Virus record (IMG/VR): IMGVR_UViG_3300033141_006329
Location: 62,001-126,000 of that record
Length of the DNA: 64,000 nt
Direction: 5' to 3' (one strand)
Shown: one piece after another, positions 21,845 through 50,261 of the stretch
Layout of the letters: each line of letters opens with the position of its first letter
How positions within the stretch are numbered: the stretch's first letter is position 1
Translations under genes and position numbers: made by a program
The notes under the pieces: generated by a model
The model's database searches: none
The model's input: only the letters and a program-made list of their open reading frames with translations
Told to the model about the DNA's origin: nothing

Positions 21845-23101
21845 TTATTTCTCCTTTTCATTGCAGGTATCTCTCCACATGTTGTTAATATTTTCCACCA
21901 TATCTATTACATTCAAACTATCATAACACGGCGAATGTCCTTCTACTGCATGAGGACATTCTGAATATTTATGTAAACAGCACGGTGCGCAATCTGCCTT
22001 AGCATCCGTCCATTCACATTTCTTATATGTCTCTAATCTTATATAGCCTGGAAATGGCCCGTATATCCCATAAGTAGGAATCCCTAATGCAGATGCTATA
22101 TGAATCAATCCTGTATCCACAGATACTACCATGTTAGATAAATATGTCATAGCAGCAGCATATCCCATATGTTTAGAATAAGGACTAAAATCAAAACACA
22201 TTTGAGGTTTATCTGACTTCCATATTAAATCAGCTATCTTAATCTTTTGATCTGGTGCATCAACAAATACTACTGGGATATCATGGGCAAGTATCTCATT
22301 CAAAACTTGTAATTGAAATTCTGGGCGAGGCGTTCTCATTATTGTATTTGCTCTCAATTGTAGGATCATAAACTTTTCTTTTAATTCCCACTTATTAAGA
22401 ATGCTCTGAACATATTGTAAATTGTTTTTATCTGGATTTTGTATTGGATATAGTTCATCTTCTGGTATATCTAAGTTCACCCATCGAGCCAATACTCTAT
22501 AAATATTTGTTGTTTCTGCTTCCTTACATTTTCCTATAATGCCATCAAAATGAATATGATAATCAGCTGAGATAAAAGGTATTTCAGTACATGGTGTAGG
22601 ATATAAATTATCTAAAAAATCCCAAGATTTAGAGAAGTGATGATGTCTTGCTGGATGTGCAAATGCTAATTTACAGTTAGGATAAAGTTTTTTGATGTAT
22701 CGAAGAATTGGTTGAACAAACATACTATCTCCCATTCCTCCTCCATATTGCCACATTAATAATCTCTTTCCATTGAGATCCTCACCATTCCAGGGTTTTA
22801 GATTTTTTGTAAATCTATTTGTTGCTTTAAATATCTTTGAATGATATCCGTCAATAAATGATAAAAGATCTATCATGTAGCGTCTATCTTTCTTTATCTT
22901 CAACGTGTAACCATCTGTAAATTCTAATACTCTTGTTTTTCTTGGTTGTGTTATAACCATTTCTGGTGGCCTATTCCTAAATTCATCTAGGGTATTTACC
23001 TGTACGTTTTTTATAATTTCTGTATCATCTAATTCGTACCCTAGTTCTCTTATAATATTATTAGGTAGTATTTTTGGCCCTGAATCTAATGGGGTTTTCA
23101 T
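21845..23101 (-). CDS. GT9-family (ADP-heptose-type) glycosyltransferase with N-terminal extension
   Basis: WNGEDLNGKRLL...GGGMGD; VVSVDTGLIHIASALGIPTYGIYGP; C-terminal CAPC...C...C. Confidence 0.8.
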   Translation of the reverse strand: MKTPLDSGPKILPNNIIRELGYELDDTEIIKNVQVNTLDEFRNRPPEMVITQPRKTRVLEFTDGYTLKIKKDRRYMIDLLSFIDGYHSKIFKATNRFTKNLKPWNGEDLNGKRLLMWQYGGGMGDSMFVQPILRYIKKLYPNCKLAFAHPARHHHFSKSWDFLDNLYPTPCTEIPFISADYHIHFDGIIGKCKEAETTNIYRVLARWVNLDIPEDELYPIQNPDKNNLQYVQSILNKWELKEKFMILQLRANTIMRTPRPEFQLQVLNEILAHDIPVVFVDAPDQKIKIADLIWKSDKPQMCFDFSPYSKHMGYAAAMTYLSNMVVSVDTGLIHIASALGIPTYGIYGPFPGYIRLETYKKCEWTDAKADCAPCCLHKYSECPHAVEGHSPCYDSLNVIDMVENINNMWRDTCNEKEK

Positions 23102-23104
23102 TTT

Positions 23105-23281
23105 TTATTTTTTACTCCTTCTTCTATTATTCCTAAAACCACAATTTGGACATTTTTTATAATCTCCAACTAGCTGACAATCGCAACTCATGCACCAATA
23201 TTTATGAGGCCGCGGAGTCATAGTTACTTCTCTATTCGACTTTTTAAAATCTGTATCTTCTCTATATTTTTCTTTATACAT
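23105..23281 (-). CDS. Small Zn-ribbon protein (58 aa, not in ORF track)
   Basis: MYKEKYRE...WCMSCDCQLVGDYKKCPNCG... Confidence 0.6.
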   Translation of the reverse strand: MYKEKYREDTDFKKSNREVTMTPRPHKYWCMSCDCQLVGDYKKCPNCGFRNNRRRSKK

Positions 23282-23282
23282 A

Positions 23283-28016: not shown

Positions 28017-28838
28017 TTATAAATTTTCTATTACTTTTGTCACTCTTATTGCACTATCAATATTGGTCTCAGCGTCGCCATTAAGGATATGCTTAAATTT
28101 CTCTACTGAGTTTTTCAGATATTCTGACCCATCGCCAGACGGTGAATGACTCAACCCATTATACATTTCTATAGTAACAGAGTCAATGTACCCATGATTA
28201 TATGTTACTCTCCCTTTCTCAAAAAAGAAAACAAATTCGAATTTATATTCTTTCATAGCATTTACTATTATATTTCCCATATCACCAACTATAACATCAT
28301 TGAAATAATTTGTATCTTTATCTTTAACAGATTTAAAACTCATCTTATCTACATCTGAAACTAAATCTATGACACTTAATACGTGGGAAGTAAGCAACCA
28401 ATTGCAGGATTCTTGGGGGTTTTCTACTATTTTACAACGGTGACAGGTTGTATATTTGAGTGGTCCTATTACATGATTTGTTAACCTTACTTGTTTTAAT
28501 ATATTTAATATAGGGGATGATTGCATTTGGTAATCTACATATAACTTTAATCCTTTTCTATTTGCTATATCTCTAAGTTCTTCAGCTTCTGCTGTGGTTT
28601 TTGCTATTGGTTTTTCCAGGAATACATGCTTACCAGCTTCTAAAGCTTTTTTAGCTATTTTGAAATGAGTAGGTATCGGGGTTGCTATAAAAACTGCTTC
28701 TATATCCTCTCTCAATAATATATTATCTAATGACTCTTCTTTCGTAGTGGTAATCAACTCAAAGTTTTTCTCTATGTAAGGGGTGAGAATATTCCCCCAC
28801 CTACCTGTGCCTATTAATGCTACTTTTATTTTATTCAT
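28017..28838 (-). CDS. Gfo/Idh/MocA-family NAD(P)-dependent oxidoreductase
   Basis: KVALIGTGRWG, VFIATP..THF..A..AL.AGKHVFLEKP. Confidence 0.85.
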   Translation of the reverse strand: MNKIKVALIGTGRWGNILTPYIEKNFELITTTKEESLDNILLREDIEAVFIATPIPTHFKIAKKALEAGKHVFLEKPIAKTTAEAEELRDIANRKGLKLYVDYQMQSSPILNILKQVRLTNHVIGPLKYTTCHRCKIVENPQESCNWLLTSHVLSVIDLVSDVDKMSFKSVKDKDTNYFNDVIVGDMGNIIVNAMKEYKFEFVFFFEKGRVTYNHGYIDSVTIEMYNGLSHSPSGDGSEYLKNSVEKFKHILNGDAETNIDSAIRVTKVIENL

Positions 28839-29743
28839 AATGTCTCCTTTAATTTTTCTTTGAAAAGATCAAATCTATTTTTAATACTATGATTTTCTAA
28901 TATAAATCTCATGGCCGAATTTCTTATTTTATCAAAATCATTTGGATTTTTCAATACCTCATCTAATTTGGAAAATAAATTATGTTTAGAAATTTCTATA
29001 TAATGTATATTTTTTCGAAAGCCCAATTTATCAAGATCGGGAGTTTCATTAGCTAACAAAAGTGAACCAGTAGCAGGAATTTCAAAATATTTACGAACCA
29101 CATAATCAAATTTTGACGAGGTAGTCAGACAGCAAAAATAAGTCCTTAAAGTTTTATAATAATCTATCCCTACTTTACTCTTATTTATATCTATTTTTGT
29201 ATAACCGGGATGTTTTAGGAATTCAATATGTTTATTATTCTGACTCAACGCAAAGTGTCTTAATGGATAGAAATTTTTATCAATGCAACCAGAAACTAAA
29301 CATTTCATAATTGGATTTTTATTAATATCAGAAAAAGAATGAGGAACAACAAAATGTGGAAACCATTGGTATTTATGGATAAACTCCGAATAATCTTTTC
29401 TAAATGCATAGTCATATGGACATAATATTAGATCTGCCCTTCTCATCATATTTTTGTAATTATTTTTAGTCTCATTGTTACCATGTATATCAGTATTATA
29501 AATTATTAATTTTTTATTCTTTGGGAGATTTAATAATCCTTTCATCAAATTTATTGCTCTTTTTCCATGTGGACACTTATATGTTATTATAATATCCTCA
29601 TTGATATCATGTGGATCATAATTATCAGCATAGACAATATTAAAACCAAATTCTTTTTTCAGCATCTCAAAAAAACAAATATATCTGCCTACTACTATAG
29701 GATTATCTTTAAATGTATTTGGTATTATAATTAATCCCTTCAT
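28835..29743 (-). CDS. GT-B glycosyltransferase (Glyco_trans_1_2/CgeB-like)
   Basis: VRKYFEIPATGSLLL...G.....HYI...IR......I...HS...R; paralogue of 31631..32542. Confidence 0.75.
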   Translation of the reverse strand: MKGLIIIPNTFKDNPIVVGRYICFFEMLKKEFGFNIVYADNYDPHDINEDIIITYKCPHGKRAINLMKGLLNLPKNKKLIIYNTDIHGNNETKNNYKNMMRRADLILCPYDYAFRKDYSEFIHKYQWFPHFVVPHSFSDINKNPIMKCLVSGCIDKNFYPLRHFALSQNNKHIEFLKHPGYTKIDINKSKVGIDYYKTLRTYFCCLTTSSKFDYVVRKYFEIPATGSLLLANETPDLDKLGFRKNIHYIEISKHNLFSKLDEVLKNPNDFDKIRNSAMRFILENHSIKNRFDLFKEKLKETL

Positions 29744-30883
29744 TTATTTCTTACCCTCGAAAATACTCTCATAAATAGTAGAAATTTCACAACCCATTCT
29801 ATTGCACCTTATACCCTTACTAAAGCATTTTTCATTACAACTAAATTCAGGATCATAATTTTTCATAATCATTTCTTTAAACTTCTCTAAATCGTCTGTA
29901 GCTTTTCCCAAACGACATTGGGGGGCTGTAGGTGTAGCTGCTGTTGAGCATTTGTATACATAACCATCAGCGCCATATGTGATCTGATAATAGCCGTAAG
30001 CGCATTTATTAAAGTTGAATTTGGTATCAATATCTGTAAACTCTGGTCCTGTATAGAATATGTACGGGCGCTCTTCTTTTGTCTCTGATAAATATTTCTT
30101 TAGTGCATCATAATATTGTTGAGAGCCTGTCACTTCTACTCTTTCTTTATATTCTCTTACTTCATCAAATGATTGATTGTAATTTGCAAATGGAATACTA
30201 AACCTGAGCGAGTCCACGCCTATATCTTTAGCAATTTTGACAATTTCTTGAAAATCCTCATGAGTACAACTGTGTGGTGAAATAAGATAACAAAGTCTGA
30301 TAGCATGTCCTTTATAGTTTTGAGACTTTCTTATGTATACAGCGTTCCTTATGCCTTTAACTATCTGATTAAATAATTCATAATTTTTTGAACCTTTAAC
30401 TTTGCACCATGATCTTGATGTTCCAGCATCTATACTTATAGATAAATAATCAGTAGGGTCAGAAATTCTATTCATTTCAGTAAGAACACCGTAATTATCC
30501 TCCAAATCTTTAAGCAAGATAGCATTGGTATGTATACCAAAATGATTATTATATTTTTTAGTCATTGCAAGAAAAGCCATAAAATAAGGATTTCCAAGTG
30601 GTTCTGTATAAGCGCCACCGTAGATATGATAAGGTATTTTGCCTTTTAATTTATCCATAAGCGATAGAGCATCTGCCTCCCAATGTCCCAACGCTTTATT
30701 GAATAATTTACCAGCACAATGACTACAATGCAACTGACAAGGCTGTTTATGATCGTTAGGCAAATGCACCTCCCATTGACGAGGCCAAACAAATTCTCCA
30801 GAGAACATTCTCTCAGGTTTATTATCTAAGTGTTTCATCAATTGTTTCCAGTAGAGGTATTCCTCAGGTCTCATATCAATCAT
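29744..30883 (-). CDS. Radical SAM protein with C-terminal Cys-rich (SPASM/twitch-like) domain
   Basis: CQLHCSHC (CxxxCxxC), GG.YTEP, TN, SIDAG; C-terminal C...GADG.VY.C...C...C...C. Confidence 0.8.
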   Translation of the reverse strand: MIDMRPEEYLYWKQLMKHLDNKPERMFSGEFVWPRQWEVHLPNDHKQPCQLHCSHCAGKLFNKALGHWEADALSLMDKLKGKIPYHIYGGAYTEPLGNPYFMAFLAMTKKYNNHFGIHTNAILLKDLEDNYGVLTEMNRISDPTDYLSISIDAGTSRSWCKVKGSKNYELFNQIVKGIRNAVYIRKSQNYKGHAIRLCYLISPHSCTHEDFQEIVKIAKDIGVDSLRFSIPFANYNQSFDEVREYKERVEVTGSQQYYDALKKYLSETKEERPYIFYTGPEFTDIDTKFNFNKCAYGYYQITYGADGYVYKCSTAATPTAPQCRLGKATDDLEKFKEMIMKNYDPEFSCNEKCFSKGIRCNRMGCEISTIYESIFEGKK

Positions 30884-30884
30884 T

Positions 30885-31634
30885 TTATTTATTCTCCTTT
30901 ATACAAAAATTATCTAATATCTGTTTATTAGCTGGTTTGCCTCTAAACGAATTGTTAAGATTTTTATCATGTATCATTTGTAACCAAAAAGGACTACCAT
31001 TTCTGATTTGTTCAACTGTGAATAATCCATTCATCTTCCAGTGAACTATTCTAAAACAAGTTTTTAGATAATTTTCTGTCAGTGGTTCTATGACTGTGAT
31101 GTAGGGGTTTGGAGGGCGGGGGTAATCCAAGGTTGTTATACCTTTATTTTTTATATTATATATAGTTCCATTTATAGGATTTAATAATCGCTCCTTTGGT
31201 GAAAATTCTTCTTGCATTATTTTTATATAATTTTTATTTAAAGCATCGTCGCAATCTAATCTGGAGGTTATAATCCAATTAGTTTCTGGATTTAATTGTT
31301 CTTTTATCTTATTTGAAAACCACTGATACATGGTGAATCTCTCATAGTTTTCATAATCTATGTATATAGGGATCATTCTATCATATTTTTCTAATAAATT
31401 TTTATTAGTATGATTCTCATCAAATAAAACCATCCATTTGAAATTTTTATTGGTCTGTCCTGCTATCGATGGATAACAATATTTATCGAAAAGCCTTAAT
31501 CGATGTTTAAACCATTCGTCTGTAGGCATATCTTCATGATTAGGTCTTTTAAGTTTTCTCCCTGTTATACATTTTGACCATTGCATGTAAACATTAAATT
31601 GCGTCAAAAGGAAATGTTCGAATTGTATACTCAT
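30885..31634 (-). CDS. Putative glycosyltransferase (GT-A, putative rhamnosyltransferase-like)
   Basis: HFLLTQFN, W..HRL.LF..YC.PSI..QTN.NF.W.VLFD, ITSRLDCDDAL. Confidence 0.7.
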   Translation of the reverse strand: MSIQFEHFLLTQFNVYMQWSKCITGRKLKRPNHEDMPTDEWFKHRLRLFDKYCYPSIAGQTNKNFKWMVLFDENHTNKNLLEKYDRMIPIYIDYENYERFTMYQWFSNKIKEQLNPETNWIITSRLDCDDALNKNYIKIMQEEFSPKERLLNPINGTIYNIKNKGITTLDYPRPPNPYITVIEPLTENYLKTCFRIVHWKMNGLFTVEQIRNGSPFWLQMIHDKNLNNSFRGKPANKQILDNFCIKENK

Positions 31635-32542
31635 AGTGTCTCCATCATTTTATTAAATATTTTTAAATTATTTTTTTCAGTAGAGTTTTCCAATACAAAT
31701 CTTCTTCCTTCTCTTCTAATATCTTCATATCTTTCAGGGTTCTTTAATACAGTATCTAATGTCTCGAAGAAATTATTTTTAGTAATTTGAATATAATGAA
31801 CTTTATTTTTGATACAAAAAAAATCCAAATCCGGAGTATATGTAGCCAATAATAATGATCCAGAGGCCATTATTTCAAAATATTTGCCTACCACAAAGTC
31901 CATTATTGTCGCAGTAGTAACACTACAAAAATATTTATTTAATTCTTGAGCATATTTAAACCCTACAGTAGAGCCTGGATTATCTGTTCTCCATCCTGAA
32001 TGTGGCAACACGACTATATTTTCAGTCTTATGCTTATATATATATTTCCTAATAGGATATAACCTTTGATTATAACGACCTGTAAATAAACATTTCATTA
32101 TAGGTTCTTTGTTTAATTCTAATTTGGAGTAATATTCCGAACTTGCAAATTGTGGGCAATTAACATATTTATCTATATAATCTGGAAATATTTTTGTGAA
32201 TGCAAAATCGTGAGGGTTTAATATTACGTCAGCTCTATCCATTAATTTTTTCAATTTTTTTACAAATTCAACATCACCTGGCCGATTACAACCGTGCAAG
32301 TCGATCATATATAGTATAAGCTTTTTATCTTTAGAAAGATTAATAAGCCCCTTATATAAATGAATTTCATCTGCTCGTGGTGTCCTGAAAACTAAAATAA
32401 TATTTTCTTCTACCTTACTTACGTCCCAGGTTTTTGTATATCCTATTCTGTAATCTAATAAATTCAGAAATGCTAAATATTTTTTTACTATAGGAAAACT
32501 CTCTTTATCTCTTAGAGGAATTAATATTAAACCTTTAGACAT
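31631..32542 (-). CDS. GT-B glycosyltransferase (Glyco_trans_1_2/CgeB-like)
   Basis: VVGKYFEIMASGSLLL...VHYI...YE.IR..GR.FV. Confidence 0.75.
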   Translation of the reverse strand: MSKGLILIPLRDKESFPIVKKYLAFLNLLDYRIGYTKTWDVSKVEENIILVFRTPRADEIHLYKGLINLSKDKKLILYMIDLHGCNRPGDVEFVKKLKKLMDRADVILNPHDFAFTKIFPDYIDKYVNCPQFASSEYYSKLELNKEPIMKCLFTGRYNQRLYPIRKYIYKHKTENIVVLPHSGWRTDNPGSTVGFKYAQELNKYFCSVTTATIMDFVVGKYFEIMASGSLLLATYTPDLDFFCIKNKVHYIQITKNNFFETLDTVLKNPERYEDIRREGRRFVLENSTEKNNLKIFNKMMETL

Positions 32543-38354: not shown

Positions 38355-38379
38355 TTGACAAGGTGATATAACTTGTCAA
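38355..38379. promoter_or_regulatory. Perfect 8-bp inverted repeat, operator-like
   Basis: TTGACAAG-N9-CTTGTCAA. Confidence 0.45.
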
Positions 38380-39327: not shown

Positions 39328-39591
39328 TTACTTATCTCCTACTTCTTTTTGTTTCCTCAATATTTCCCACTGCTTTAATGCGACTGGTTTCTTTGTCCAT
39401 TCATTAGGATTTCCTTCACTAGATGCTGCAAAAGTTATTTCCAATGTATGTTCCTCAATATTAACATTTGGTACACCAAATGCAGTATTATCATCAGTCT
39501 TGATATAGTTATCATCTAACCAATCCCATAAATCCTGTAGGGGAACTATTACCTTTCCTTCGTAGATTCTAGCCATTAAATTGTTACCCAA
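39328..39591 (-). CDS. Hypothetical protein
   Basis: 87-aa ORF; probable start at MARIYEG. Confidence 0.55.
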   Translation of the reverse strand: MGNNLMARIYEGKVIVPLQDLWDWLDDNYIKTDDNTAFGVPNVNIEEHTLEITFAASSEGNPNEWTKKPVALKQWEILRKQKEVGDK

Positions 39592-40652
39592 CCTCCCTTA
39601 ACTTTTCGTGTCTTCTTTAACTTTTTCTGTAGCCTTTGAAACTTCAAAGTATCATTGTTCCTAAGAGAATTACCTGGCTCTGTTGTTGCTATCTTTATAA
39701 TATCTTCAGAGGTATTAGTCCAGGTTCTATATTTTTTAACAAATTCTAAACCACTCCTTGCTATTGCTTCTCGTTCATCATCATGCTTCAAATAATATTC
39801 CACTGCATTATTTAGTGCTATTATATTCTTAAATTCTACAATGTCTCTTTTATCTTTCATGTCCATTAATTCTTCCATTTTTGGAATACGTTTGGTTAGA
39901 ACCATTGATCCACACGCCATGCAATTCCATAATCTCAAAGATGTATAACCAGGATAATTTCCTCTACTGATGTTTAATACCAATTTACTTTGTGAACATA
40001 TTTTTCTGAATTCATCGGGTTCGACAAAACTAGTATAGTGGGGTCCAAAGAATTTTACATTGTAGTTTTTCTTCCTTAAAAAATCATAAATAGTGGTCCT
40101 CTCAGGATCAGCTGCACCTATAAAAATTACATCATATTTCTTTTTAGTTAGTTCTGGATAATATTTATCAGGATCTGTTCCATCGAATACATGATAAACT
40201 GGCATTTGTGCACTATTGCTCCAGAGCAAAGCAGTTCCATACCCAGTAGCACTTCTATATGCACAAAATCTTGAAGACTCAAATAATGATTTATTTTTAA
40301 AATGGGAATATACATCAGGCATCCAAAAATATAATCTGCAATTCATTTTGGACATTTGAAAAGTATGTAAAGGTATACCATTACCCTTCATTATTATAAT
40401 TAGATCACAAGTTCTAGATAGTTCCATAACATTATTTATAACAGCACTAATATTCCTTTTAAGAGCAGTTCTATAATCTAATCTTATAACTTCACTTACT
40501 GAATCCAATCTTTCCATATGATTTGCAAATGGTATGGATGATGATGCTGGATTATTAAATACCCCTGCGAATCCTACTTTTAAGGGTAATTGTAAGGGAT
40601 TTTCTACCTCTATATCTCTACCTAAAATACTTGGAGTTACTTTCCTGATCAT
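39576..40652 (-). CDS. CgeB-like GT-B glycosyltransferase (Glyco_trans_1_2)
   Basis: YDVIFIG...ER, SK.VLNISR, SLRLWNCMACGS.VLT, YYL.HD.ERE.IA..G. Confidence 0.8.
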   Translation of the reverse strand: MIRKVTPSILGRDIEVENPLQLPLKVGFAGVFNNPASSSIPFANHMERLDSVSEVIRLDYRTALKRNISAVINNVMELSRTCDLIIIMKGNGIPLHTFQMSKMNCRLYFWMPDVYSHFKNKSLFESSRFCAYRSATGYGTALLWSNSAQMPVYHVFDGTDPDKYYPELTKKKYDVIFIGAADPERTTIYDFLRKKNYNVKFFGPHYTSFVEPDEFRKICSQSKLVLNISRGNYPGYTSLRLWNCMACGSMVLTKRIPKMEELMDMKDKRDIVEFKNIIALNNAVEYYLKHDDEREAIARSGLEFVKKYRTWTNTSEDIIKIATTEPGNSLRNNDTLKFQRLQKKLKKTRKVKGGWVTI

Positions 40653-41578
40653 ATTTCTAACTCCACAGTTGCACAGAGAGGAGCATCTTTTGAACCTGCT
40701 TTATCTTTATGTTTCCTTAAAAATCTAATCATCTTGTCAGGATCTTTTTTGGTAGCATAATATATTCTCCTGTTCTCTAATCTATATTGACCGTTTATCC
40801 ATTTGTCCTTTTTAACGTGGCTGACGGGATGATATAAGTGGTTAATAGTCCAGGGGAACATATCATAAGATTTAAACATATGAGATGCTCTAAGGGCCAT
40901 CTCGTTGTCTATACCTCCGAGTTCTTGGAACCCCTCATTGGCACCTCCCATCTCCCAATAAGCAGTTTTATTATAATACAAAATTCCCCCCTCAGCCATA
41001 CCCCGGGTAGGTTTAGATACTCGTATCTTCTTGCTGAATGTTTCATCCCAGTATACTATTTCAGACCAAGCAAAGAACCATCGTTTCACCTTATTCTTTG
41101 GTCGTTTTTTAGCAAATTTATATAGCTCAGTAAAGTAGTTTAAATCCACACAAATATCTCCTTCTCCCATCAACAAATGCCCAGTCTTAGCATTTCTTAC
41201 TCCTACATTGAAAAGCCACCCCTTATTAAAAATGGGATATCTGACTAATATTTTTGTTATGTTTTTATTTGCAGGAATTCTTATATTATTAGAATATAGA
41301 GGAAGTGTAGGATCTAGCATTTGTTCTACGATTATAAGATGTATATTTTGGGGTATTACTCGTACTATAGATTCTAAGTTCCTAAGTCGATATTCGAATC
41401 CGTCATTATTCATATTGCATACGGGTATAATGAAATCCATATTGAGATTAATTTTCCCCCCATATATTCTATTATATTCATCCACTGAGGGATGGTCGGT
41501 TTTCACGTTTATATGTTTTAGAAGCCCAAGTTCTGATACACAGACTTTTCCGCATACTTTACATTCTATTTTAGCCAT
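40649..41578 (-). CDS. GT-A glycosyltransferase (GT2/GT7C-like) with N-terminal C2H2-type Zn finger
   Basis: CKVCGK..S..GL..HI....H; FIIPV, FNKGWLFNVG, EGD, GG.NE.F...GG.D.E. Confidence 0.75.
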   Translation of the reverse strand: MAKIECKVCGKVCVSELGLLKHINVKTDHPSVDEYNRIYGGKINLNMDFIIPVCNMNNDGFEYRLRNLESIVRVIPQNIHLIIVEQMLDPTLPLYSNNIRIPANKNITKILVRYPIFNKGWLFNVGVRNAKTGHLLMGEGDICVDLNYFTELYKFAKKRPKNKVKRWFFAWSEIVYWDETFSKKIRVSKPTRGMAEGGILYYNKTAYWEMGGANEGFQELGGIDNEMALRASHMFKSYDMFPWTINHLYHPVSHVKKDKWINGQYRLENRRIYYATKKDPDKMIRFLRKHKDKAGSKDAPLCATVELEI

Positions 41579-42483
41579 TTTTTCTCCTCCAATATTTCAA
41601 ATACCTTTTTAGGTGTTGTTGTTTTATAATCCAGATCATCAAGAAATGTACACTTGGTCTTAAAAGGATTTTCTTTTACACGGTGTCTTATATTCTCATG
41701 TCCCCACAGAATTGTTGGAGTTCCCAGTAAATTTGATAAGATAGGTAATGAAGATTGACTCCCTATAGTAACCTTAGTCCGTCTCATAATTTCAATTGTT
41801 AAACCTATATCAGACAGATCATTTAGAGTTTCAACATATTTTTCTAATACTATAAAATTAGGATTTCTTGGAGGATGAACTATAGTCGGAGAAATGCCAG
41901 CTATAAATACTATATATTTTTCACTCTTACTAAACAAGTTGAATAAATCATACCAATATTCATCAGGCCAATTCCTATCAATATCTACACTCCTTAAATC
42001 CATTCTTTTTCTTGGGCATAATACTACAGGAATTTTATCCTTGTTTTTCTCTATAAATATATCTGCGAGTTTTTTATTAGCTGAGTGAGGTGTAAAATTG
42101 AAGTCCATTTTATCAAATGGAAAAATATTCCTTTTATTTCCTTTAGGTGGCTCGATTAATTTATGATGAGGAAATTCTTTTCTGATCTTGTCTATAATCA
42201 TCTGATACTTTTCATCAGGGAAAAAATCTAGACGATACATATTTGGTCTGTATATGTTATAGTCACCATTAATTGTAATAGTCATAATTCCATCTACAGC
42301 ACCATAATACAAATCACTACGTTCTTTCCTAGTAACAACAATAACATTTTTTTCAGGGTAGGTCTTTTTGAACCATCTCACATACCCACAAAATCGAATT
42401 AGTTCCCATCCCAATTCTCCAAAAAATGCGAATACTACTTTTTCTTGTTTTAATAACAATCTTAAATATTCTGATCTGATCAT
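41566..42483 (-). CDS. GT-B glycosyltransferase, GT9-like
   Basis: FFGELGWEL N-motif; TIGSQSSLPILSNLLGTPTILWG C-motif. Confidence 0.6.
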   Translation of the reverse strand: MIRSEYLRLLLKQEKVVFAFFGELGWELIRFCGYVRWFKKTYPEKNVIVVTRKERSDLYYGAVDGIMTITINGDYNIYRPNMYRLDFFPDEKYQMIIDKIRKEFPHHKLIEPPKGNKRNIFPFDKMDFNFTPHSANKKLADIFIEKNKDKIPVVLCPRKRMDLRSVDIDRNWPDEYWYDLFNLFSKSEKYIVFIAGISPTIVHPPRNPNFIVLEKYVETLNDLSDIGLTIEIMRRTKVTIGSQSSLPILSNLLGTPTILWGHENIRHRVKENPFKTKCTFLDDLDYKTTTPKKVFEILEEKKWLK

Positions 42484-44258
42484 AATCGATTTATTAACTC
42501 CTCAAATATTTCCGGTATTGGTAGTTTGGGTTTTGTAGAATGCACAGCTACTCTAGCCATTGAATCCGACCGATTTATATCCAGAGAATTTGAACTATGA
42601 TCAATCACAATAGAATTCTTTTTCAAAGCCCAGCAGATATGAACAGCATCAGAATCAGATGGCACAATAACTAAACTACAAGTATTTAAAATACCAGCAG
42701 CTACAGGATCAGATACATTATTTATTATCTTAATATTTTTCCTAATTTTAAATCTCTCAATCTGGGCAGGGTCTAACCTAGTTGTCTCTCCACCCATAGA
42801 TAATAATAAAATAGTATTAGCTCGATCATTAGCTAATCTGGAACATACAATACTCAAATCTTTCCATATAGTATGTTTATCATTTTTACAAGTAGATATA
42901 ATTATGGCTGTAGTTTGAGGATGTATATATCCCTTATAAGGAGTAAAATTACAGTAGGGTTCAGGTACATGTTCAATACACGGATCTACAACTGAATAAT
43001 TTTTCTCTGCTGTGTATTTACTTAAGTTGAGAGGTTCTATAATATCTAAATCCTTAGGTAATTTTATATTATAACTACTGGTAGTTTTTATTATATTAGG
43101 ACCATACTTACAAAAATTTGTCATTCCGTTGTGAAAATCATCTATCTTATATACCTTATCCACCATAGAATTTCGTATCAAAGAAACCGCAGGATTTAAT
43201 ACATCATTTGTTACTATATCTACAGAACCATATTTTTTATATATCCCTTTTATAAGAGGAGTTATATTCAGTAATGCCTTTGTATCAGAATTAACAACCA
43301 ATAATATCCTAAAATTTTTATCGAATTCCAATTCTCCATTTTTAAATGTTATTTCAGTTATATCACCCATGTCTTCTTCTTCGGTTTCTATACTATCGAT
43401 ATCATCATCCATAGAATATAAATTTATCTTTGCCCGTCTTTTAAGTTTCCAATAAGGCAGTAAATCTTTACCTCTTCTCATACATCCTATTTTCGAAGCA
43501 TCACCCCACTCAACACTATAATTACTAGGTATGAATATGGAATGTTCTGTTTTCTTTTTAAACTGAGCAACATTTTTAAGATCTCTATCTTCTAGATTAT
43601 TTGTATCTCGCCTTTTTCTTAAACATAGACCTTTATTTTTTACTGAAATTCGTTCCTCAAGACCGGTGGCTTTTAATTGATTTATGAGATGTAGTCGTGA
43701 ATATTCTGAAAATAATTCCTCTTCCAACCCACATTCTAATTCCACTATATGTTTAACTTTTGCTATAACTATAGGACTGTATATGTTTTTCTTTTTTTGC
43801 CATTCTATTCTTTTAATCCTGGAAAAATAAGCACTATGAAATTTACTATCATTTTTTAAAATTTTAAGAGGATTACTTGAATCATCAAACATGGTGGGAA
43901 CAGTTATGAATTCCTTCTCCCAATCTATGCCTAAGAATTCCTTTGCTATAATTTGATGAGGGCTCATGATAGTCCAACCATCTGTTATGACGACTGTTGC
44001 AAAAGGATAATCTGTAGCTATTTGTTTAAGAAGTGTATTGATAGTTAAAGAATAATTATAGGCGGTGGATTGTATAGACATAATATTTTCAGATTCTTCA
44101 GGTATACAATGTTTTATTTTATTTGTGGATCTTCCCATCATACATACATGCATATCACATTCAATTAGTTTATGAGCAAAAACCGTAGGTAACATAGATA
44201 TAAAATCTGGCCTACATTCATCGCTATTAATACCTACGACGGCGTGGATAACTTCCAT
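42480..44258 (-). CDS. Two-domain glycosyltransferase (GT-A-like N half plus GT9-like C half)
   Basis: N: VVITDG, GLEEEL; C: NITPLIKGI.KKY..VDIV, GIL..CSLVIVPSDS..VHI..AL.K. Confidence 0.6.
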   Translation of the reverse strand: MEVIHAVVGINSDECRPDFISMLPTVFAHKLIECDMHVCMMGRSTNKIKHCIPEESENIMSIQSTAYNYSLTINTLLKQIATDYPFATVVITDGWTIMSPHQIIAKEFLGIDWEKEFITVPTMFDDSSNPLKILKNDSKFHSAYFSRIKRIEWQKKKNIYSPIVIAKVKHIVELECGLEEELFSEYSRLHLINQLKATGLEERISVKNKGLCLRKRRDTNNLEDRDLKNVAQFKKKTEHSIFIPSNYSVEWGDASKIGCMRRGKDLLPYWKLKRRAKINLYSMDDDIDSIETEEEDMGDITEITFKNGELEFDKNFRILLVVNSDTKALLNITPLIKGIYKKYGSVDIVTNDVLNPAVSLIRNSMVDKVYKIDDFHNGMTNFCKYGPNIIKTTSSYNIKLPKDLDIIEPLNLSKYTAEKNYSVVDPCIEHVPEPYCNFTPYKGYIHPQTTAIIISTCKNDKHTIWKDLSIVCSRLANDRANTILLLSMGGETTRLDPAQIERFKIRKNIKIINNVSDPVAAGILNTCSLVIVPSDSDAVHICWALKKNSIVIDHSSNSLDINRSDSMARVAVHSTKPKLPIPEIFEELINRL

Positions 44259-44267: not shown

Positions 44268-45182
44268 TTACCAAACTGTGGCGGCGGTTAAATGTTTATA
44301 TTTGTCATATATTTGCTTTGCGGATAAATTCCTAAGAGATAGTTCTTTATCTTCTAGGGTATGTTTTGTTCTTCTATATACGTCAGGACCTTGTCTTGTA
44401 AGAACATTACACATAGACGATTGTAGGACTTCCCCAACATGAAGGACGAGAGGATCATCATCTTTTGGGGGTTTGACCCCAGCTACGAAATTAATAATTC
44501 CCTTACGTCTTTTTATCATGAACCAGCTGGTTGAATCTTGTTTTTTGTAACAATTATAAGTTTTTACAAGCTCTTCAGATTCCCATTCTAACATCAGTAA
44601 CTGATTGTAATCAAAGAACCAAAAACAACTGCCCCCTCCCCAGGAACTGGAAATACAACCGAACTCTTCACCATCTACATTAAAGGTATAATTGTTGGTC
44701 ATTGGATTATCACGAGCTATTTTTGGTATACCCCCTGGTGCTTTTACAATATAATGGGTGTTAGGTTCTAAGGTTTTTAATTCTTGATGTGCATTCAGGA
44801 AATATTTATCCCAGCCCCTTCCAAGAATAACATCGTTATCTATAAGAACATAATAATCATTCATTGTTTCTGTCTTTGTGAGATGACGGACGTCGTGGGC
44901 GGTTTTCATCATTTGTGTCCACCTATGAAATGATGATGCTTTGCCAAAACAATTATTGAGAGAAGTAGAGGTATCATAGGAATAATATTTAATTTTTCCA
45001 TCCTTTAATAATTTTGCGAATATAGCAAATCTTTCAGGGGATGGTAAGGATAAGTTATCAAAAACGTAAATATCTATATCGCGGAATAATGAGGTTGTTG
45101 TGAGGATAGATTCTATAGTTTTTTGTGTTAATACTGATCTGTCTCTTGCTGTCAACATCACTGATAATCTGTTATTAATCAT
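44268..45182 (-). CDS. GT2-like glycosyltransferase
   Basis: LSVMLTARDR..LT.KTIESI, VFDN.S, YYVLIDNDVIL (DxD); start moved to MINNRL (GAGGGG RBS). Confidence 0.7.
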   Translation of the reverse strand: MINNRLSVMLTARDRSVLTQKTIESILTTTSLFRDIDIYVFDNLSLPSPERFAIFAKLLKDGKIKYYSYDTSTSLNNCFGKASSFHRWTQMMKTAHDVRHLTKTETMNDYYVLIDNDVILGRGWDKYFLNAHQELKTLEPNTHYIVKAPGGIPKIARDNPMTNNYTFNVDGEEFGCISSSWGGGSCFWFFDYNQLLMLEWESEELVKTYNCYKKQDSTSWFMIKRRKGIINFVAGVKPPKDDDPLVLHVGEVLQSSMCNVLTRQGPDVYRRTKHTLEDKELSLRNLSAKQIYDKYKHLTAATVW

Positions 45183-45212
45183 ATAGTCCCCCTCGTTCAT
45201 TTTTAATGTTTT

Positions 45213-45222
45213 TAGTTTGTCC
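45213..45222 (-). promoter_or_regulatory. Class 2 element upstream of the GT2 operon
   Basis: gaataaaGGACAAACTAAAAAC. Confidence 0.55.
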
Positions 45223-45251
45223 TTTATTCCATAAAAAGTTCCAGAGAAAAC

Positions 45252-45275
45252 CCACACCATCAAGCGGACAAATTA
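45252..45275 (+). promoter_or_regulatory. Class 1 element at the strand switch, upstream of the GT9-queC-hldE operon
   Basis: CCACACCATCAAGCGGACAAATTA. Confidence 0.7.
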
Positions 45276-45372: not shown

Positions 45373-46635
45373 GTGAGGAAACCAAATAAATCTAGTATAA
45401 AAAATAAAATGGGGATTAACCCCAACGAACTACGAAAGGTAAACACAGTAAAAGAATTAATATCAAAGCCACCATTTTTTATTCTTGCCAAAGTAGTGAC
45501 GGGCTGTTCAATAGGCGGAGGCCCAAATGGGCGGGCAGTTAAATTAGAAAAGGGAAGTGTCGTAACAATGGCATTAGGAGCATTCTTCACAGCTTCTAGA
45601 TCAAAAGACCGCAGGGTCCTCTTGAAGCCATATAAGAGGAAATTCGCAGATGTATTCAAAAGATATTATGGTCAAAATCTCGATGGTAAAAATATATTGT
45701 TCCTGAGGGGCGGCGGCTTTGGAGATTTGTTATTTCTTCAACCCATAATGAAAGAACTAAAAAGATTATATCCTACCTGCACAATTACGGTAGCATGTTT
45801 TACAAGATTTATCGATATATTATCAAGTTTCCCAGAAGGTCTTATAGATTACGTTACGCCCGTACCTGTCAATTTAGAAGTCTTAAAATTCAATGATTAT
45901 CACTTTATTGTAGAGGGCATCATAGAACGATGTACAGCCGCTGAAAAAGAAGTTTGTTATGACTTAATGGCGCAAGCTTCAGGTTTAGATATAGATTTCT
46001 CTTCTATGGATCAGATAATAGAATTAGTTCCTGACAAAAAACTCGTGAAAGAACTATCTCCAATTCTTCCAGGTAATTTTGTAGTAGTTCAAGCCAGAGC
46101 ATCTTCACCGATACGCATGATGCCAGATTCCGCGTGGGCCTCTATTATCAAGAAGATAGGTGCCCTTGGGAAGAAAGTTGTATTGTTAGATAGACCTGAA
46201 AATGAGAAATTATATACAGACTTTATAGAGCATAATGATCTTAAAGATATTGCAATAAATTTAGCAAGTAAGTGCCTGACAATTAATCATGCGATAGCTA
46301 TTGCGAGTATGTCGGATGGAGTTGTGTGTATAGACAGTGCCTTTTCGCACATAGGAGCAGCACTAGGAAAGCCAGTATTAGGTCTTTACGGTGCATTTAA
46401 AGGTGAACTGCGTATGAAGTATTATAAGAATGCTGATTGGGTTCAAGGCGAACCTACATGTAAAAAAGGTAAACCTTGTGCAGCACATCATGAAAGAAAG
46501 TTCAAATGCGAATCCTTCAAAGCAAAAGGATATCCAGATTGTATGGCAAATATAGATGAGGACGAAGTCATGGAAAAATTCAAAAAATTATTTATAAAAG
46601 AAGAGGAGACAACTGATGGAAGAGACGACGTATAG
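45373..46635 (+). CDS. GT9-family (ADP-heptose-type) glycosyltransferase, paralogue of 21845..23101
   Basis: GQNLDGKNILFLRGGGFGDLLF; VCIDSAFSHIGAALGKPVLGLYG; C-terminal C...PC..H...C...C. Confidence 0.8.
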   Translation: MRKPNKSSIKNKMGINPNELRKVNTVKELISKPPFFILAKVVTGCSIGGGPNGRAVKLEKGSVVTMALGAFFTASRSKDRRVLLKPYKRKFADVFKRYYGQNLDGKNILFLRGGGFGDLLFLQPIMKELKRLYPTCTITVACFTRFIDILSSFPEGLIDYVTPVPVNLEVLKFNDYHFIVEGIIERCTAAEKEVCYDLMAQASGLDIDFSSMDQIIELVPDKKLVKELSPILPGNFVVVQARASSPIRMMPDSAWASIIKKIGALGKKVVLLDRPENEKLYTDFIEHNDLKDIAINLASKCLTINHAIAIASMSDGVVCIDSAFSHIGAALGKPVLGLYGAFKGELRMKYYKNADWVQGEPTCKKGKPCAAHHERKFKCESFKAKGYPDCMANIDEDEVMEKFKKLFIKEEETTDGRDDV

Positions 46636-46855
46636 GGAATTTTTAGAAAGGTTTAAAATAGAGTTTGGGGATTTTATAAGACTCGCAGAGACAGGAAAAA
46701 CAGTTCGTTATTCTGCCCTGAAAGCTAGGAAAAAATCAATTCAACTAAGAAATATGTTAAAGGATTTTAGGGGCTATTCATTAACAAACGATAAGAGGAT
46801 ATCCGAAATATTATCCGAAGCCAAAATAAAGATTAGGTCGGAGGTAACAGGCTAA
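46616..46855 (+). CDS. Histone H1-like (Hc1-type) small basic protein
   Basis: A.KARK.S..L...LK.FR..SL motif. Confidence 0.55.
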   Translation: MEETTYREFLERFKIEFGDFIRLAETGKTVRYSALKARKKSIQLRNMLKDFRGYSLTNDKRISEILSEAKIKIRSEVTG

Positions 46856-47502: not shown

Positions 47503-47504
47503 TT

Positions 47505-48290
47505 ATGTCAAATATAGTAATATTGTTCAGTGCAGGTATTGACTCGTTTCTCACAGATGATCATTTTAAACAACGTAGAATTCCTGTTAAGAAGCTTTAT
47601 TTTGATTTGAACTCTGTTTACACATCACCAGAAAAATCTCTATTACAAAGTATATATGATGATGTAGAATACCATTCATTATTAAATGTTGCTAGTATTG
47701 AAGAAGAGAATATGAATGTACCAAATAGAAATATAATGTTAGCAACAATGGCCAAGTCTCTTTATCCTCAAACAGATGAAATATATCTAAATGAAATGAG
47801 AGACGATAGAGGGCTAGATAGTAATAAAGATTTATTCTCAATGTACTCTCATGTTCTAAGTATGAGTTCGGGTTATAAAGTAGAAATAAAAAGTCTGTTC
47901 TGGGATATTGAGAAGAGTGAGGCTATAAAACAGTATATGGAATATGGTAGAAGTAAGATATCATTGATCACACATACCTTTTCTTGTTTTGGAGATAATC
48001 TAACCCGCAGAGTTCCTGAAGTTTCTGTCTATGAATCAAGAGCAGATGATTTTGCATATGTATCAACTATACCTTTACAAGTACCAGTTTGTATGAAGTG
48101 TAAAGCCTGTTTTCGAAAAGCTTGTGCTCTGACGATGGGTAATATTTATATACCGTTTAAGAATATGAACATGGTTGACGAATATGAAGAGAATATAGGT
48201 TCTCTGGATAATTATCCTAATCGAAAAAAATCAGTGAGAAATTATATAAAATTTATGAGGCAATATGGAAAAGAAAATTTCACCCTATAG
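47505..48290 (+). CDS. queC: 7-cyano-7-deazaguanine synthase QueC-like
   Basis: LFSAGIDS PP-loop, VPNRN, K.EAI, TFSC, CMKCKAC.RK. Confidence 0.7.
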   Translation: MSNIVILFSAGIDSFLTDDHFKQRRIPVKKLYFDLNSVYTSPEKSLLQSIYDDVEYHSLLNVASIEEENMNVPNRNIMLATMAKSLYPQTDEIYLNEMRDDRGLDSNKDLFSMYSHVLSMSSGYKVEIKSLFWDIEKSEAIKQYMEYGRSKISLITHTFSCFGDNLTRRVPEVSVYESRADDFAYVSTIPLQVPVCMKCKACFRKACALTMGNIYIPFKNMNMVDEYEENIGSLDNYPNRKKSVRNYIKFMRQYGKENFTL

Positions 48291-48804
48291 GATATTTACA
48301 GAATGGCTACTAAACCCTTGCCCAGATGCTGAATTATCTGGAGATGTGATTAAAGCTATTAATCCCAGGACAGTGATATGTATGTTTGGAAAAATTGGGG
48401 GCCTCACTATATTCTTGAATGATCACTTTAATAACTTTAGTGTTATGAACTTGGATCCTTTAGAGTTTTATCAATTCCTTAAGAGTCTCGTAAAAAAATA
48501 TAAAATTAAGAAATGGGACTTTTCATATTTTCCTACAATGAAGCGAGATAAAACCATATCAGAGATCCAAATGAAACTTCCTCATCTCAAGAAAAGTGAG
48601 ATCATCTATCTATTAGAACAATGTAAGAGTGATGAGGATTATGATTCCTTCTGTGAGAGTCTGGGAATTAGAAAGAACCCTAAAATAAAGAAAATTAAAA
48701 AGAAAGGTAAAAAAAATAAAAAGCTAATCGTGTCTACCTTCGGTGATAGTATGATAAAAAATATTAGAACTATGGATGATTGGATAGATTGCTTTGGTAT
48801 GTAA
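48265..48804 (+). CDS. Hypothetical protein (possibly small clamp-loader subunit, gp62-like)
   Basis: 179 aa helical, Lys-rich tail; family assignment weak. Confidence 0.45.
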   Translation: MEKKISPYRIFTEWLLNPCPDAELSGDVIKAINPRTVICMFGKIGGLTIFLNDHFNNFSVMNLDPLEFYQFLKSLVKKYKIKKWDFSYFPTMKRDKTISEIQMKLPHLKKSEIIYLLEQCKSDEDYDSFCESLGIRKNPKIKKIKKKGKKNKKLIVSTFGDSMIKNIRTMDDWIDCFGM

Positions 48805-50261
48805 GGAGGAACAATATGAAAGACATAACTAAATATTTAGAACTATTCAAAAATAAAAGTATTCTTGTACTTGGGGATTTAATGGTTGATGAATATCAAT
48901 GGTGTAAGACTCGAAAAATTTCCCAAGAGGCTCCGGTTCCTGTTGTTAATTTATATAATACAGAATTAAGATTAGGTGGAGCAGGAAATGTCATTAATAA
49001 TATCAGAAGTTTAGGTGGGAATGTTACTGCTGTTGGTACAATTGGAAGCGATATAGAGGGCGATTGGATAATGGATGAGCTGGAAAGAATAGGGGCCGAT
49101 AGCATGGGAGTATTTGTGGATTATAATAAACCCACCATAAAGAAAACTCGAATAATTGCAGGAACCCAACAGATAGTTCGTATAGATAGAGAAGATACAA
49201 AATGCATATCTCCAGATTTAGTTGATGAAATGTTTAAGTTTATGACAGACAATATAGAAGAGTGGGATGCTATATTAATTTCAGATTATGCCAAAGGAAC
49301 TATACTTAATTACCTCGCGATAAATACAATAGGATGGGCAAATGCTAATAATAAATTGGTTATTGTAGATCCTAAAGGTAAAGATTTTTCCAGATATTTT
49401 AATGCTAGTGTTCTTACTCCTAATAGCGAGGAAGTAAAAGAGGCTTACGGGAGTGGCGATATATACAATCTTGGATATAAAATATTTAATGATTTGAAAT
49501 TGTCTCATGGATTACTTGTAACTTTGGGCAAGGATGGAGCCTGGGCATTCACTGAACATAATCAAAAAATAATAAAAACAGATGCTAAAAAAGTTGCAGA
49601 TGTTTCAGGGGCTGGTGATACAATGATAGCAGCATTAACATTAGCAATGTCTTGTGGTATGGATATTTACGATGCATCTAAATTTGCAAACATGGCTGCT
49701 GGAATTTCAGTGGGTAAATTGGGAACATCAACAGTTACTCCAGATGAAATACTAAGTAATGTAAATAGTCTTATAAGTAATGGTAAGCTGAGATCTAGAA
49801 AAGATATTATTAATACTGTTAAGGATCATAGAACAGTTGATAAAAAAATAGCTTTTACGAATGGTTGTTTCGATCTGCTACATGTGGGTCATATTAAGTT
49901 GTTAGAGGAAGCTAAATCATTCGCAGACATTCTGGTAGTGGGTATAAACTCAGATAAATCTATACGACGATTAAAGGGAAGGGATAGACCATTTGTAATA
50001 CAGGAAGAAAGAGCCAAAATTTTATCGGCATTAGAGTATGTGGATTATGTAGTAATTTTTGATGAGGATACACCATCATTATTAATAGAATCTATAAAAC
50101 CAGATATCCTAGTAAAGGGTTCTGATTATATAATAAGTGATATTGCAGGTTCCAATTTCGTAATAGAAAATGGAGGATCTGTTAAATTGGTAGAATTGTT
50201 AGAACATAAATCAACATCAAATATTATTAATTTGGTTAAGAAAGAAGGAGAAATAAGATGA
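48780..50261 (+). CDS. hldE: Bifunctional heptose-7-phosphate kinase / heptose-1-phosphate adenylyltransferase
   Basis: LGDLMVD.Y, ISQEAPVPV, GGAGNV, SDYAKG, VDPKG, TPN, DVSGAGDT; C-terminal FTNGCFDLLHVGH, VGINSD.S..RLKG..RP, STS. Confidence 0.95.
   Translation: MDRLLWYVRRNNMKDITKYLELFKNKSILVLGDLMVDEYQWCKTRKISQEAPVPVVNLYNTELRLGGAGNVINNIRSLGGNVTAVGTIGSDIEGDWIMDELERIGADSMGVFVDYNKPTIKKTRIIAGTQQIVRIDREDTKCISPDLVDEMFKFMTDNIEEWDAILISDYAKGTILNYLAINTIGWANANNKLVIVDPKGKDFSRYFNASVLTPNSEEVKEAYGSGDIYNLGYKIFNDLKLSHGLLVTLGKDGAWAFTEHNQKIIKTDAKKVADVSGAGDTMIAALTLAMSCGMDIYDASKFANMAAGISVGKLGTSTVTPDEILSNVNSLISNGKLRSRKDIINTVKDHRTVDKKIAFTNGCFDLLHVGHIKLLEEAKSFADILVVGINSDKSIRRLKGRDRPFVIQEERAKILSALEYVDYVVIFDEDTPSLLIESIKPDILVKGSDYIISDIAGSNFVIENGGSVKLVELLEHKSTSNIINLVKKEGEIR

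Follow-up and report, generated by a model that had tools for sequence, protein, structure and literature searches.

Phages that carry heptose-nucleotide genes together with clusters of glycosyltransferases (GTs) are of an already known kind. The conventional reading of such clusters is remodelling of the host's lipopolysaccharide (LPS) (PMC7824862; PMC10747093), and they have been labelled "LPS genes" for twenty years without test. Heptose is also put on protein, by the BAHT enzymes, of which TibC carries an iron finger with C339, C342, C358 and C370 as its ligands (PMC4358343), and it has been put on DNA: a metagenomic phage cluster that includes an enzyme resembling T4 beta-GT is reported to have yielded heptosyl-5-hydroxymethylcytosine (heptosyl-5hmC) DNA (Pyle et al., bioRxiv 10.1101/2023.12.21.572611). 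We describe here a window, a stretch of 64,000 nucleotides that constitutes bases 62001-126000 of the 223,370-base IMG/VR record IMGVR_UViG_3300033141_006329 (G000; coordinates are those of the window unless marked G000), in which a bifunctional HldE is encoded along with two paralogous enzymes of glycosyltransferase family GT9. Part of the "LPS" machinery of phages appears to be a distinct, large and mostly viral GT9 family lodged in replisome operons, with a finger hitherto known solely from virulence-associated protein heptosyltransferases. The genes that matter most to the argument are the following.

21845..23101, minus strand: GT9 heptosyltransferase paralogue 1 (PF01075, 28.2 bits; isoelectric point (pI) 6.9; architecture as in paralogue 2)
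45373..46635, plus strand: GT9 heptosyltransferase paralogue 2 (PF01075, 51.2 bits; N-domain at residues 1-~100; Cys4(+His) finger)
48816..50261, plus strand: HldE, bifunctional heptose-7-P kinase / heptose-1-P adenylyltransferase (alternative TTG start at 48780)
G000 211709-212287, outside the window but in the same phage: GmhB-like HAD-IIIA phosphatase

Both GT9 proteins pass the PF01075 gathering cut-off (22 bits) and are the sole PF01075 matches in the 223-kb record. (This search and the other searches for pathway genes and families cover 223 kb of a 306,137-bp contig, all but its last ~83 kb.) They are 27% identical over 392 amino acids (aa) (BLASTP, E 5e-46) in an alignment that spans the N-terminal stretch V-N-T-x-x-E-x-x-x-(R/K)-P-P as well as the C-terminal Cys cluster, and an extra N-domain of ~100 residues is common to both. 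A sequence-only reading of this DNA had proposed just such a pair of paralogues sharing an N-domain and a Cys cluster, and profile and pairwise comparison bear it out. Twenty full-length homologues (alignment A1) are invariant at G114, G115, G117, D118, Q240, A243, R248, D321 and H326, and equally at the finger residues C363, C369, H372, C379 and C390; paralogue 1 retains the GGGD...D...H and CCHCC signature. The catalytic Asp (GGxGD) and the D-x-x-x-x-H donor motif, which is of the WaaC type, are thus kept in both. The AlphaFold (AF2) model of paralogue 2 (pLDDT 87.8) has the GT-B fold of GT9 at residues ~100-412 and finds its structural matches in 3TOV (Z 24.5), WaaF (1psw, 24.0), TibC (21.9) and WaaC (2h1h, 21.6); a search of PDB sequences with a profile of the family matched WaaF (3e-14) and WaaC, and did not match TibC. 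The N-domain is small and beta-rich. Modelled alone (pLDDT 76.7), it yields weak GINS-B/SH3-like matches (E at least 0.08, best Z 5.2), and TibC is not in its structural match lists.

Two alternatives for what these enzymes act on come into view at once. The first is remodelling of the host's LPS or lipo-oligosaccharide core, in which GT9, GT-B and GT-A enzymes with HldE/GmhB would form a waa-like line working on lipid A-Kdo at the inner membrane, the altered cell surface serving superinfection exclusion or preventing the trapping of progeny. WaaF, WaaC and OpsX are indeed the nearest matches of the catalytic core, in sequence and in structure, but the scores against the NCBIfam equivalogs for LPS heptosyltransferases fall far under their cut-offs (58.8 against 134.6 for TIGR02195; 41.8 against 185.3 for TIGR02193), and the N-domain and the Cys4 finger are absent from LPS heptosyltransferases. 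We consider this alternative improbable, and it is the weakest of DNA, protein and LPS as an acceptor for the two finger-bearing enzymes.

The second is protein O-heptosylation of the BAHT kind: the two GT9s would put heptose on Ser/Thr of a phage virion protein, such as the Ser/Thr-rich fibre or a capsid protein, or of a replication-associated protein or a host protein, and the remaining GTs would extend the glycan, as in the virion glycosylation of mycobacteriophages or giant viruses. What speaks for it is the finger. In a profile-sequence comparison by hhalign with TibC (sequence from enterotoxigenic Escherichia coli (ETEC) H10407; 89.7% probability, E 1.9e-6, 306 columns), C363, C369, C379 and C390 pair one-to-one with the four TibC ligands C339, C342, C358 and C370, D118 pairs with the catalytic base D110, and a local HH...CP..K...C pattern is held in common; the earlier lead to TibC and Aah was accordingly a good one, the Cys cluster aligning residue for residue with the iron finger. 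Moreover, in the Swiss-Prot AlphaFold library (Foldseek) the BAHT entries BimC, BAHTCr, TibC and Aah alone align from residue ~33, covering part of the N-domain, while all LPS enzymes begin aligning at ~100 of the paralogue 2 model. The hhalign alignment with TibC likewise reaches into the N-domain. Other features speak against it: a helix (275-287) stands in the model where TibC has its beta-hairpin thumb, so that a dodecamer ring is not expected; D321/H326, of the WaaC-type donor motif, pair with TibC P300/W305; the core is nearer WaaF than TibC; and the N-domain, taken by itself, does not significantly match the barrel of TibC. Nor does any autotransporter-like or repeat substrate gene adjoin either paralogue: in ETEC tibC overlaps tibA, but the genes downstream of the phage GT9s encode a 79-aa Hc1-like protein (paralogue 2) and three ~90-aa paralogous proteins (paralogue 1). 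Protein is possible as the acceptor, if doubtful. Whatever the acceptor, sequence and models place the two paralogues in a distinct GT9 clade that combines a WaaC/WaaF-like core and donor site with a predicted finger of BAHT type and an N-domain of BAHT size.

The finger-bearing GT9 family is large and mostly viral. Searched exhaustively with a profile, 1.84 billion cluster representatives yielded 381 clusters with E<=1e-30 and 2582 with E<=1e-10. Among 175 sampled members, D118 and D321 are present in 164, H326 in 161 and all four Cys in 131, most of the others being fragments. In the deposited phage collection there is no tblastn match (E<=1e-5) to paralogue 2, and neither P0140 nor paralogue 1, when used for locus scans, turned up a viral contig. 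In the literature and collections searched, there is no description of the family, of how large it is, of its BAHT-type metal site or of its fixed place in replisome operons. One member, P0110 (411 aa, L098 221-1456), sits in what is apparently a bacterial chromosome, among genes for an aldolase, an FGGY kinase, AraC, GH42, folP and gyrA, so that the family is not exclusively viral. Fusions also occur: a tandem GT9-GT9 protein of 841 aa (P0027, L093 1170-3695), and an 849-aa GT9+GT2+methyltransferase fusion (L094 5069-7618) whose domain set matches that of two separate proteins of the window, a 592-aa GT and a 215-aa methyltransferase. The C-terminal 200-residue extension of a DnaB-linked subfamily (P0130) contains no Pfam domain in any homologue.

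The donor side of the heptosylation reading is well supported. The HldE gene, whose call on the 306-kb contig begins at the ATG (48816), encodes a protein that scores 443.6 bits against the bifunctional HldE model NF008454, below its cut-off of 521, in an alignment that runs from position 4 to position 473 of 475. Its kinase domain, at 321.7 bits against TIGR02198 (RfaE-I; E 4.5e-96, 313 of 315 positions), is a little under the curated cut-off of 345, and its adenylyltransferase domain passes the TIGR02199 (RfaE-II) cut-off (192.7 bits against 181.5). The Pfam domains are PfkB and CTP_transf_like, and the GAGD and HVGH (HxGH) motifs are present in the translation. The earlier claim of a full bifunctional HldE thus holds, on the end-to-end alignment, the RfaE-II score and both motifs. 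The closest cellular homologues, 43-46% identical, are from Desulfuromonadales/Geobacteraceae and Campylobacterota; HldE-like genes in deposited phages are found mainly in cyanomyoviruses and huge metagenomic phages. It had also been said, correctly, that GmhA and GmhB are not encoded in the window, and a search of the whole genome for gmhA, gmhB and hldD had been proposed. Run on the 223 kb, that search found the GmhB-like phosphatase listed above, whose best family is NF006506 (heptose 1,7-bisphosphate 7-phosphatase; 146.9 bits, E 4e-43) and whose catalytic DxDGV motif and CxH...CxCRKP zinc loop are intact; it found no SIS-family isomerase (GmhA), by Pfam models and a phage GmhA-like query, and no epimerase (HldD). 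HldE would phosphorylate D-glycero-D-manno-heptose-7-P, and the 7-phosphate would be taken off by the GmhB-like phosphatase, whose gene lies in another part of the genome; the GmhA isomerase step would have to be supplied by the host or by a gene in the last 83 kb of the contig. Very probably, then, the phage makes ADP-heptose.

Does this donor belong to the GT9 enzymes? Gene neighbourhoods in 25 sampled contigs, with neighbours labelled by means of the window's own proteins, bear on the question. Directly after the L093 GT9-GT9 fusion comes a nucleotidyltransferase resembling HldE domain II (E 3e-27); L094 has a nucleotidyltransferase of the same kind (E 8e-25) and a GmhA-like SIS_2 gene near its GT9; a PfkB kinase resembling HldE domain I lies beside GT9 in L099/L100; and L107 has an HldE-domain-II-like nucleotidyltransferase nearby. 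Heptose-nucleotide genes near GT9 in independent lineages support a nucleotide-heptose donor, and, because family features and gene linkage point the same way, the two paralogues probably use ADP-heptose. The sequence-only reading had proposed a phage heptosylation system acting on virion fibres, LPS or DNA. Its donor half stands, by virtue of HldE, the GmhB-like phosphatase and linkage in other phages; among the three acceptors we lean, tentatively, towards DNA.

The neighbourhoods also bear on the acceptor, and several more genes of the window are needed to follow them.

16795..17712, minus strand: thymidylate-synthase (TS)-like enzyme with a Zn-ribbon insert and a short C-terminus (PF00303), candidate dUMP hydroxymethylase
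46616..46855, plus strand: Hc1 (histone H1)-like basic protein, 79 aa (weak PF07432 match), overlapping the GT9 stop codon
46855..47502, plus strand: S-adenosylmethionine (SAM)-dependent methyltransferase, 215 aa, not at this position in most relatives
47505..48290, plus strand: QueC-like PP-loop ATPase (PF06508, 28.7 bits; TIGR00364), kept in the GT9 operon
48265..48804, plus strand: basic protein, 179 aa, of no matching family, kept after the QueC-like gene
53049-55577: UDG-superfamily N-domain and family-B DNA polymerase in one open reading frame (ORF) (UDG-PolB)

In the window, paralogue 1 is linked to the TS-like gene, primase and clamp loader, and paralogue 2 heads the PolB operon. Nine contigs of the window's clade share the arrangement of five GT genes followed by GT9 - Hc1-like - QueC-like - 179-aa ... 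261-aa - UDG-PolB - QueE-like, the Hc1-like gene adjoining GT9 directly 3' in all nine. In a second lineage (L096; five contigs, down to 45% identity) the order DnaB - 155-aa - GT9 - 334-aa is strictly kept; except in L113, a TS-like gene lies some 4 kb upstream, and ribonucleotide reductase lies downstream. L108 has DnaB - 116-aa - GT9 - Toprim primase. In L106 an orthologue of paralogue 1 (59% identical) is followed by two tiny ORFs (~550 bp) and then by an orthologue of the window's TS-like gene. A complex prediction for paralogue 2 and its Hc1-like neighbour scored 0.00; it gives no answer and is evidence neither way. The ~261-aa conserved ORF always precedes UDG-PolB and has a weak PolB match in one relative.

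It is because of this conserved placement in replisome operons that we favour DNA as the acceptor, tentatively. The two soluble GT9 paralogues would use the phage-made heptose donor, as family features and linkage suggest; the acceptor would be the phage's own DNA, with conserved gene order as the one ground for saying so; the heptose would go on a hydroxymethyl-pyrimidine made via the neighbouring TS-like enzyme; and the heptosylated genome would be shielded from host nucleases. The TS-like enzyme has its Zn-ribbon insert at about residues 195-217, and its alignment stops at TS residue ~220 of 264, ~42 residues before the end of bacterial TS. The C-terminus of TS is needed for the hydride-transfer step; since it is short here, the enzyme is possibly a hydroxymethylase, judging from its sequence, but archaeal-type TS is also short. 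Homologues of it are again encoded close to GT9 family members in other lineages of phages. The arrangement has a counterpart in T4, where beta-gt is directly beside gene 42 (a TS-family dCMP hydroxymethylase) and 1.7 kb from gene 43, and alpha-gt is beside gene 47. Also counted for DNA are the basic character of the paralogue-2 family (pI 8.9-9.5) and the prediction that no island protein has a transmembrane helix. That the finger-bearing GT9s are the first DNA heptosyltransferases of GT9, replisome-linked and placing heptose on 5-hydroxymethyl-uracil or another modified base, is a proposition that we put forward with appreciable doubt.

A number of observations weigh against DNA. 1) Outside this family, the Cys4 finger is known only in BAHT enzymes, which act on protein (PMC4358343). 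2) The TS-like enzyme keeps the dUMP-binding residues, including Asn where T4 gp42 has Asp, and there is no other TS homologue and no ThyX in the 223-kb record, so that it could simply be the phage's thymidylate synthase. 3) We know of no GT9 enzyme that acts on DNA, and ~11 GT domains are, to our knowledge, far beyond the needs of any known DNA glycan. 4) No TET/JBP enzyme was found in this phage's record. 5) Neither T4 beta-GT nor alpha-GT is among the 50 best PDB matches listed by Foldseek or by VIA-align. 6) HldE is missing at the equivalent locus in most relatives; most close relatives without it at the GT9 locus presumably rely on the host. 7) In L094 the GT9, a distant member of the family, the GT9+GT2+methyltransferase fusion and the heptose genes lie between portal/MuF/protease/major-head-like genes and neck/sheath genes. 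The block of other GTs is not explained by a DNA acceptor and may be a second system.

The last of these observations argues for protein, since GT9, fusion, nucleotidyltransferase and GmhA-like gene of L094 stand inside a head-neck module; so does the solubility of all the island enzymes. A candidate protein acceptor is encoded in the window, 6.5 kb away on the same strand:

11587..15282, minus strand: fibre protein, 1231 aa, acidic, 23% Ser+Thr, with a YadA-stalk motif

In most lineages, however, the GT9 gene is in replisome operons and not in structural modules, which is a point against protein and the one that leads us back to DNA. The same placement weighs on the LPS alternative: one would not expect the gene of a surface-glycan enzyme to be kept between DnaB and primase or in first place in a PolB operon.

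The partners of paralogue 2 in the nine-contig clade suggest a further possibility, that it acts together with the QueC-like, QueE-like and 179-aa proteins to glycosylate a 7-deazaguanine-type base or another small molecule, its target being a deazapurine intermediate or DNA base in place of a pyrimidine. The kept order GT9 - Hc1-like - QueC-like - 179-aa ... QueE-like favours it, as does the presence in the phage of QueD (PTPS, 112 bits; G000 5601-5942) and of a QueE-like radical-SAM protein (55845-56639) next to PolB. The QueC and QueE matches are weak, however, no TGT/DpdA homologue was detected (PF01702), there are DnaB-GT9 lineages without QueC-like or QueE-like genes, and we know of no glycosylated deazaguanine in DNA; we regard this as highly improbable. 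In its own right, the phage has a partial 7-deazaguanine (preQ0) toolkit, consisting of QueC-like and QueE-like proteins and a clear QueD, and may carry deazaguanine-modified DNA or feed the host's queuosine synthesis.

The two finger-bearing paralogues are surrounded by other sugar enzymes, which are listed here.

28017..32542, minus strand: second sugar block, comprising GFO/IDH/MocA oxidoreductase, Glyco_trans_1_2, radical SAM, Rhamno_transf and Glyco_trans_1_2 (Pfam, NCBIfam)
39576..40652, minus strand: GT-B glycosyltransferase (Glyco_trans_1_2), 358 aa (PF13524, 74.7 bits)
40649..41578, minus strand: GT-A-like protein, 309 aa (weak Glyco_transf_7C match), kept in relatives
41566..42483, minus strand: GT9-like GT-B protein, 305 aa, without extra domains (ESM Atlas), kept in relatives
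42480..44258, minus strand: two-domain protein, 592 aa, with a GT2-like N-half and a GT9-like C-half (ESM Atlas)
44268..45263, minus strand: GT2-like (GT-A) glycosyltransferase, 331 aa (ESM Atlas 0.98, TM-score (TM) 0.84 to a viral GT2 cluster)

The sequence-only reading had counted up to four GT9-type enzymes. Two have PF01075 support, and the count understates the island: about 11 GT domains lie in the stretch 28-46.6 kb, which also encodes a methyltransferase, a radical-SAM enzyme and a GFO/IDH/MocA oxidoreductase, and at least nine GT domains are close by in addition to the two paralogues. The other pair of GT9-like domains, which had been read at 41566 and 42480, finds support from ESM Atlas features and structure and none from hidden Markov models or BLAST. 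The 305-aa protein matches viral PF01075-bearing "GT9" clusters (features 0.98, TM 0.81-0.83) and the 592-aa protein viral PF01075/PF00535 clusters (features 0.95), its residues ~303-592 having TM 0.69 to a bacterial GT9 cluster. Neither ORF has a Pfam or NCBIfam match even at E<=5, neither resembles the GT9 paralogues significantly by BLASTP or by profile, and profile A1, run against all ORFs of the 223-kb record, returns the two paralogues only, these two proteins being too remote. On the predicted structures, a GT9-like nature for both is a good lead.

What might so many GTs be for? The other nine or so GT domains, the methyltransferase, the oxidoreductase and the radical-SAM enzyme would extend the glycan begun by the finger-bearing enzymes or build a separate one. 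Here the LPS alternative has more to offer: several peripheral enzymes of GT9 type, GT4-like or GT2-like, occur alongside heptose-nucleotide genes but without Wzx/Wzy/WaaL, a mix that recalls bacterial core-oligosaccharide clusters; HldE-like genes with GT clusters are so annotated in P-SSM2, S-SSM7 and S-CAM1 (discussed in PMC7824862); and early expression would suit surface remodelling. The LPS reading may apply to the island's plain GT9-like, GT2-like and GT-B enzymes; for the finger-bearing pair DNA is still the acceptor that we favour.

Several observations about the island and its borders stand apart from these arguments. The three tandem paralogous small proteins directly 3' of paralogue 1 (20949-21841; 90, 88 and 106 aa) all end in R-T-x-L-F-G and match no family; MAFFT hinted at a motif shared with the Hc1-like protein, but homology was rejected on an hhalign probability of 0.1%. 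A DUF488-N3a gene ("active DUF488-N3 subclade", 87 bits; 36764-37117) lies inside the GT island, and ~1.2 kb in mid-island (37504-38728) is without any ORF above 50 aa; Rfam found no family in the ORF-poor stretch 36.7-39.7 kb, and no tRNA was found in the 1.2-kb gap. A scan for sigma-70 promoters and terminators in window positions 36.5-51 kb did no better than on shuffled sequence. A homing-endonuclease-like ORF (9493-10389; phrog_314), together with HNH or I-TevI-like genes at other island positions in relatives L005 and L007, indicates that the island is targeted by mobile endonucleases.

The source of the window is a ~306-kb jumbo phage. The IMG/VR record corresponds to bases 3-223372 of the 306,137-bp JGI contig 3300033141|Ga0366833_1000001, and is classed as a provirus, only 223,370 bases of the contig having been retained; since the gene content is that of a jumbo phage, the cut may be an over-trim of a free phage genome and not a real prophage boundary. 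The sequence-only reading had allowed that the contig might be a chimera with host chromosome. GC is even (~32%, between about 0.30 and 0.37) across the whole 223-kb record, and the heptose/GT region is bracketed by the 1231-aa fibre, a gp44-like clamp loader, DNA primase, the UDG-PolB fusion and a DnaB-type helicase. With uniform GC and phage replication genes on both sides, a host chimera is ruled out for this region, which is phage. Other genes of the window include a full-length PurD (phosphoribosylamine-glycine ligase; 26673-27920, TIGR00877, 502.6 bits) between the clamp loader and the sugar genes, a GroES/Cpn10-like co-chaperonin (20068-20349; PF00166, 42 bits), and two adjoining paralogous ORFs of ~124 aa (18428-19160) with near-identical N-termini (MK(M)KTKELI(R/K)QLQEADP...).

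Should DNA be the acceptor, phage DNA hypermodification would gain an enzyme family and a route for a sugar that are both new, with implications for the evasion of restriction and CRISPR and for enzymatic DNA-labelling tools; the product would be a heptose analogue of base J or of glucosyl-hmC, widespread in uncultured phages (hundreds of 50%-identity clusters). Should it be protein, phages would have their first BAHT-like system, by which virions could be glycosylated in the cytoplasm.

How does the locus compare with systems already described? The clusters of cyanomyoviruses and jumbo phages (P-SSM2, S-SSM7, S-CAM1; Iyer et al. 2021, PMC7824862) likewise encode a PfkB kinase, a HIGH-motif nucleotidyltransferase, sometimes a SIS isomerase, and several paralogous GTs; here, in contrast, HldE is fused, bifunctional and near-equivalog, and the linkage is to the replisome and not to a hypervariable island. 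The phage as a whole resembles the moraphages (PMC12619734; freshwater/groundwater, genomes up to 307 kb), which it recalls in its size, its T4-like replication genes and its several conserved GTs (several GT families are core in moraphages), but the relatives of its HldE point to Desulfuromonadales and Campylobacterota, not to Bacteroidota. With WaaC/WaaF/WaaQ, the best sequence and structure matches of the catalytic core, the finger-bearing enzymes have GGxGD and DxxxxH in common; they differ in their additional N-domain and Cys4 finger, in genomic context and in scoring far under the equivalog cut-offs. The resemblance to BAHT (TibC, Aah, BimC; PDB 4RAP/4RB4) extends to the GT9 GT-B core with its catalytic Asp in the same position, to a predicted Cys4 metal finger, each of its Cys aligned, that is inserted ahead of the C-terminal helix, to an extra N-terminal domain of ~100 residues, to a soluble, cytoplasmic enzyme and to an ADP-heptose donor (for the phage a probable one, by gene linkage). 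The differences are that the phage enzymes lack the TibC thumb and have D-x-x-x-x-H in place of P300...W305, that their N-domain is not demonstrably the flattened beta-barrel of TibC (residues 1-97), and that their genes are in replication operons with no autotransporter substrate gene. The T4 alpha-/beta-gt and gene 42 arrangement is matched in layout, two GT-B enzymes within a replication block and one of them beside a TS-family enzyme, but the GT families of the T4 enzymes are different ones, and the Asn typical of dUMP enzymes is retained in the TS-like enzyme of this phage. The cluster of Pyle et al. (bioRxiv 10.1101/2023.12.21.572611), finally, shares a phage-made sugar-nucleotide and provides the precedent for heptose on DNA.

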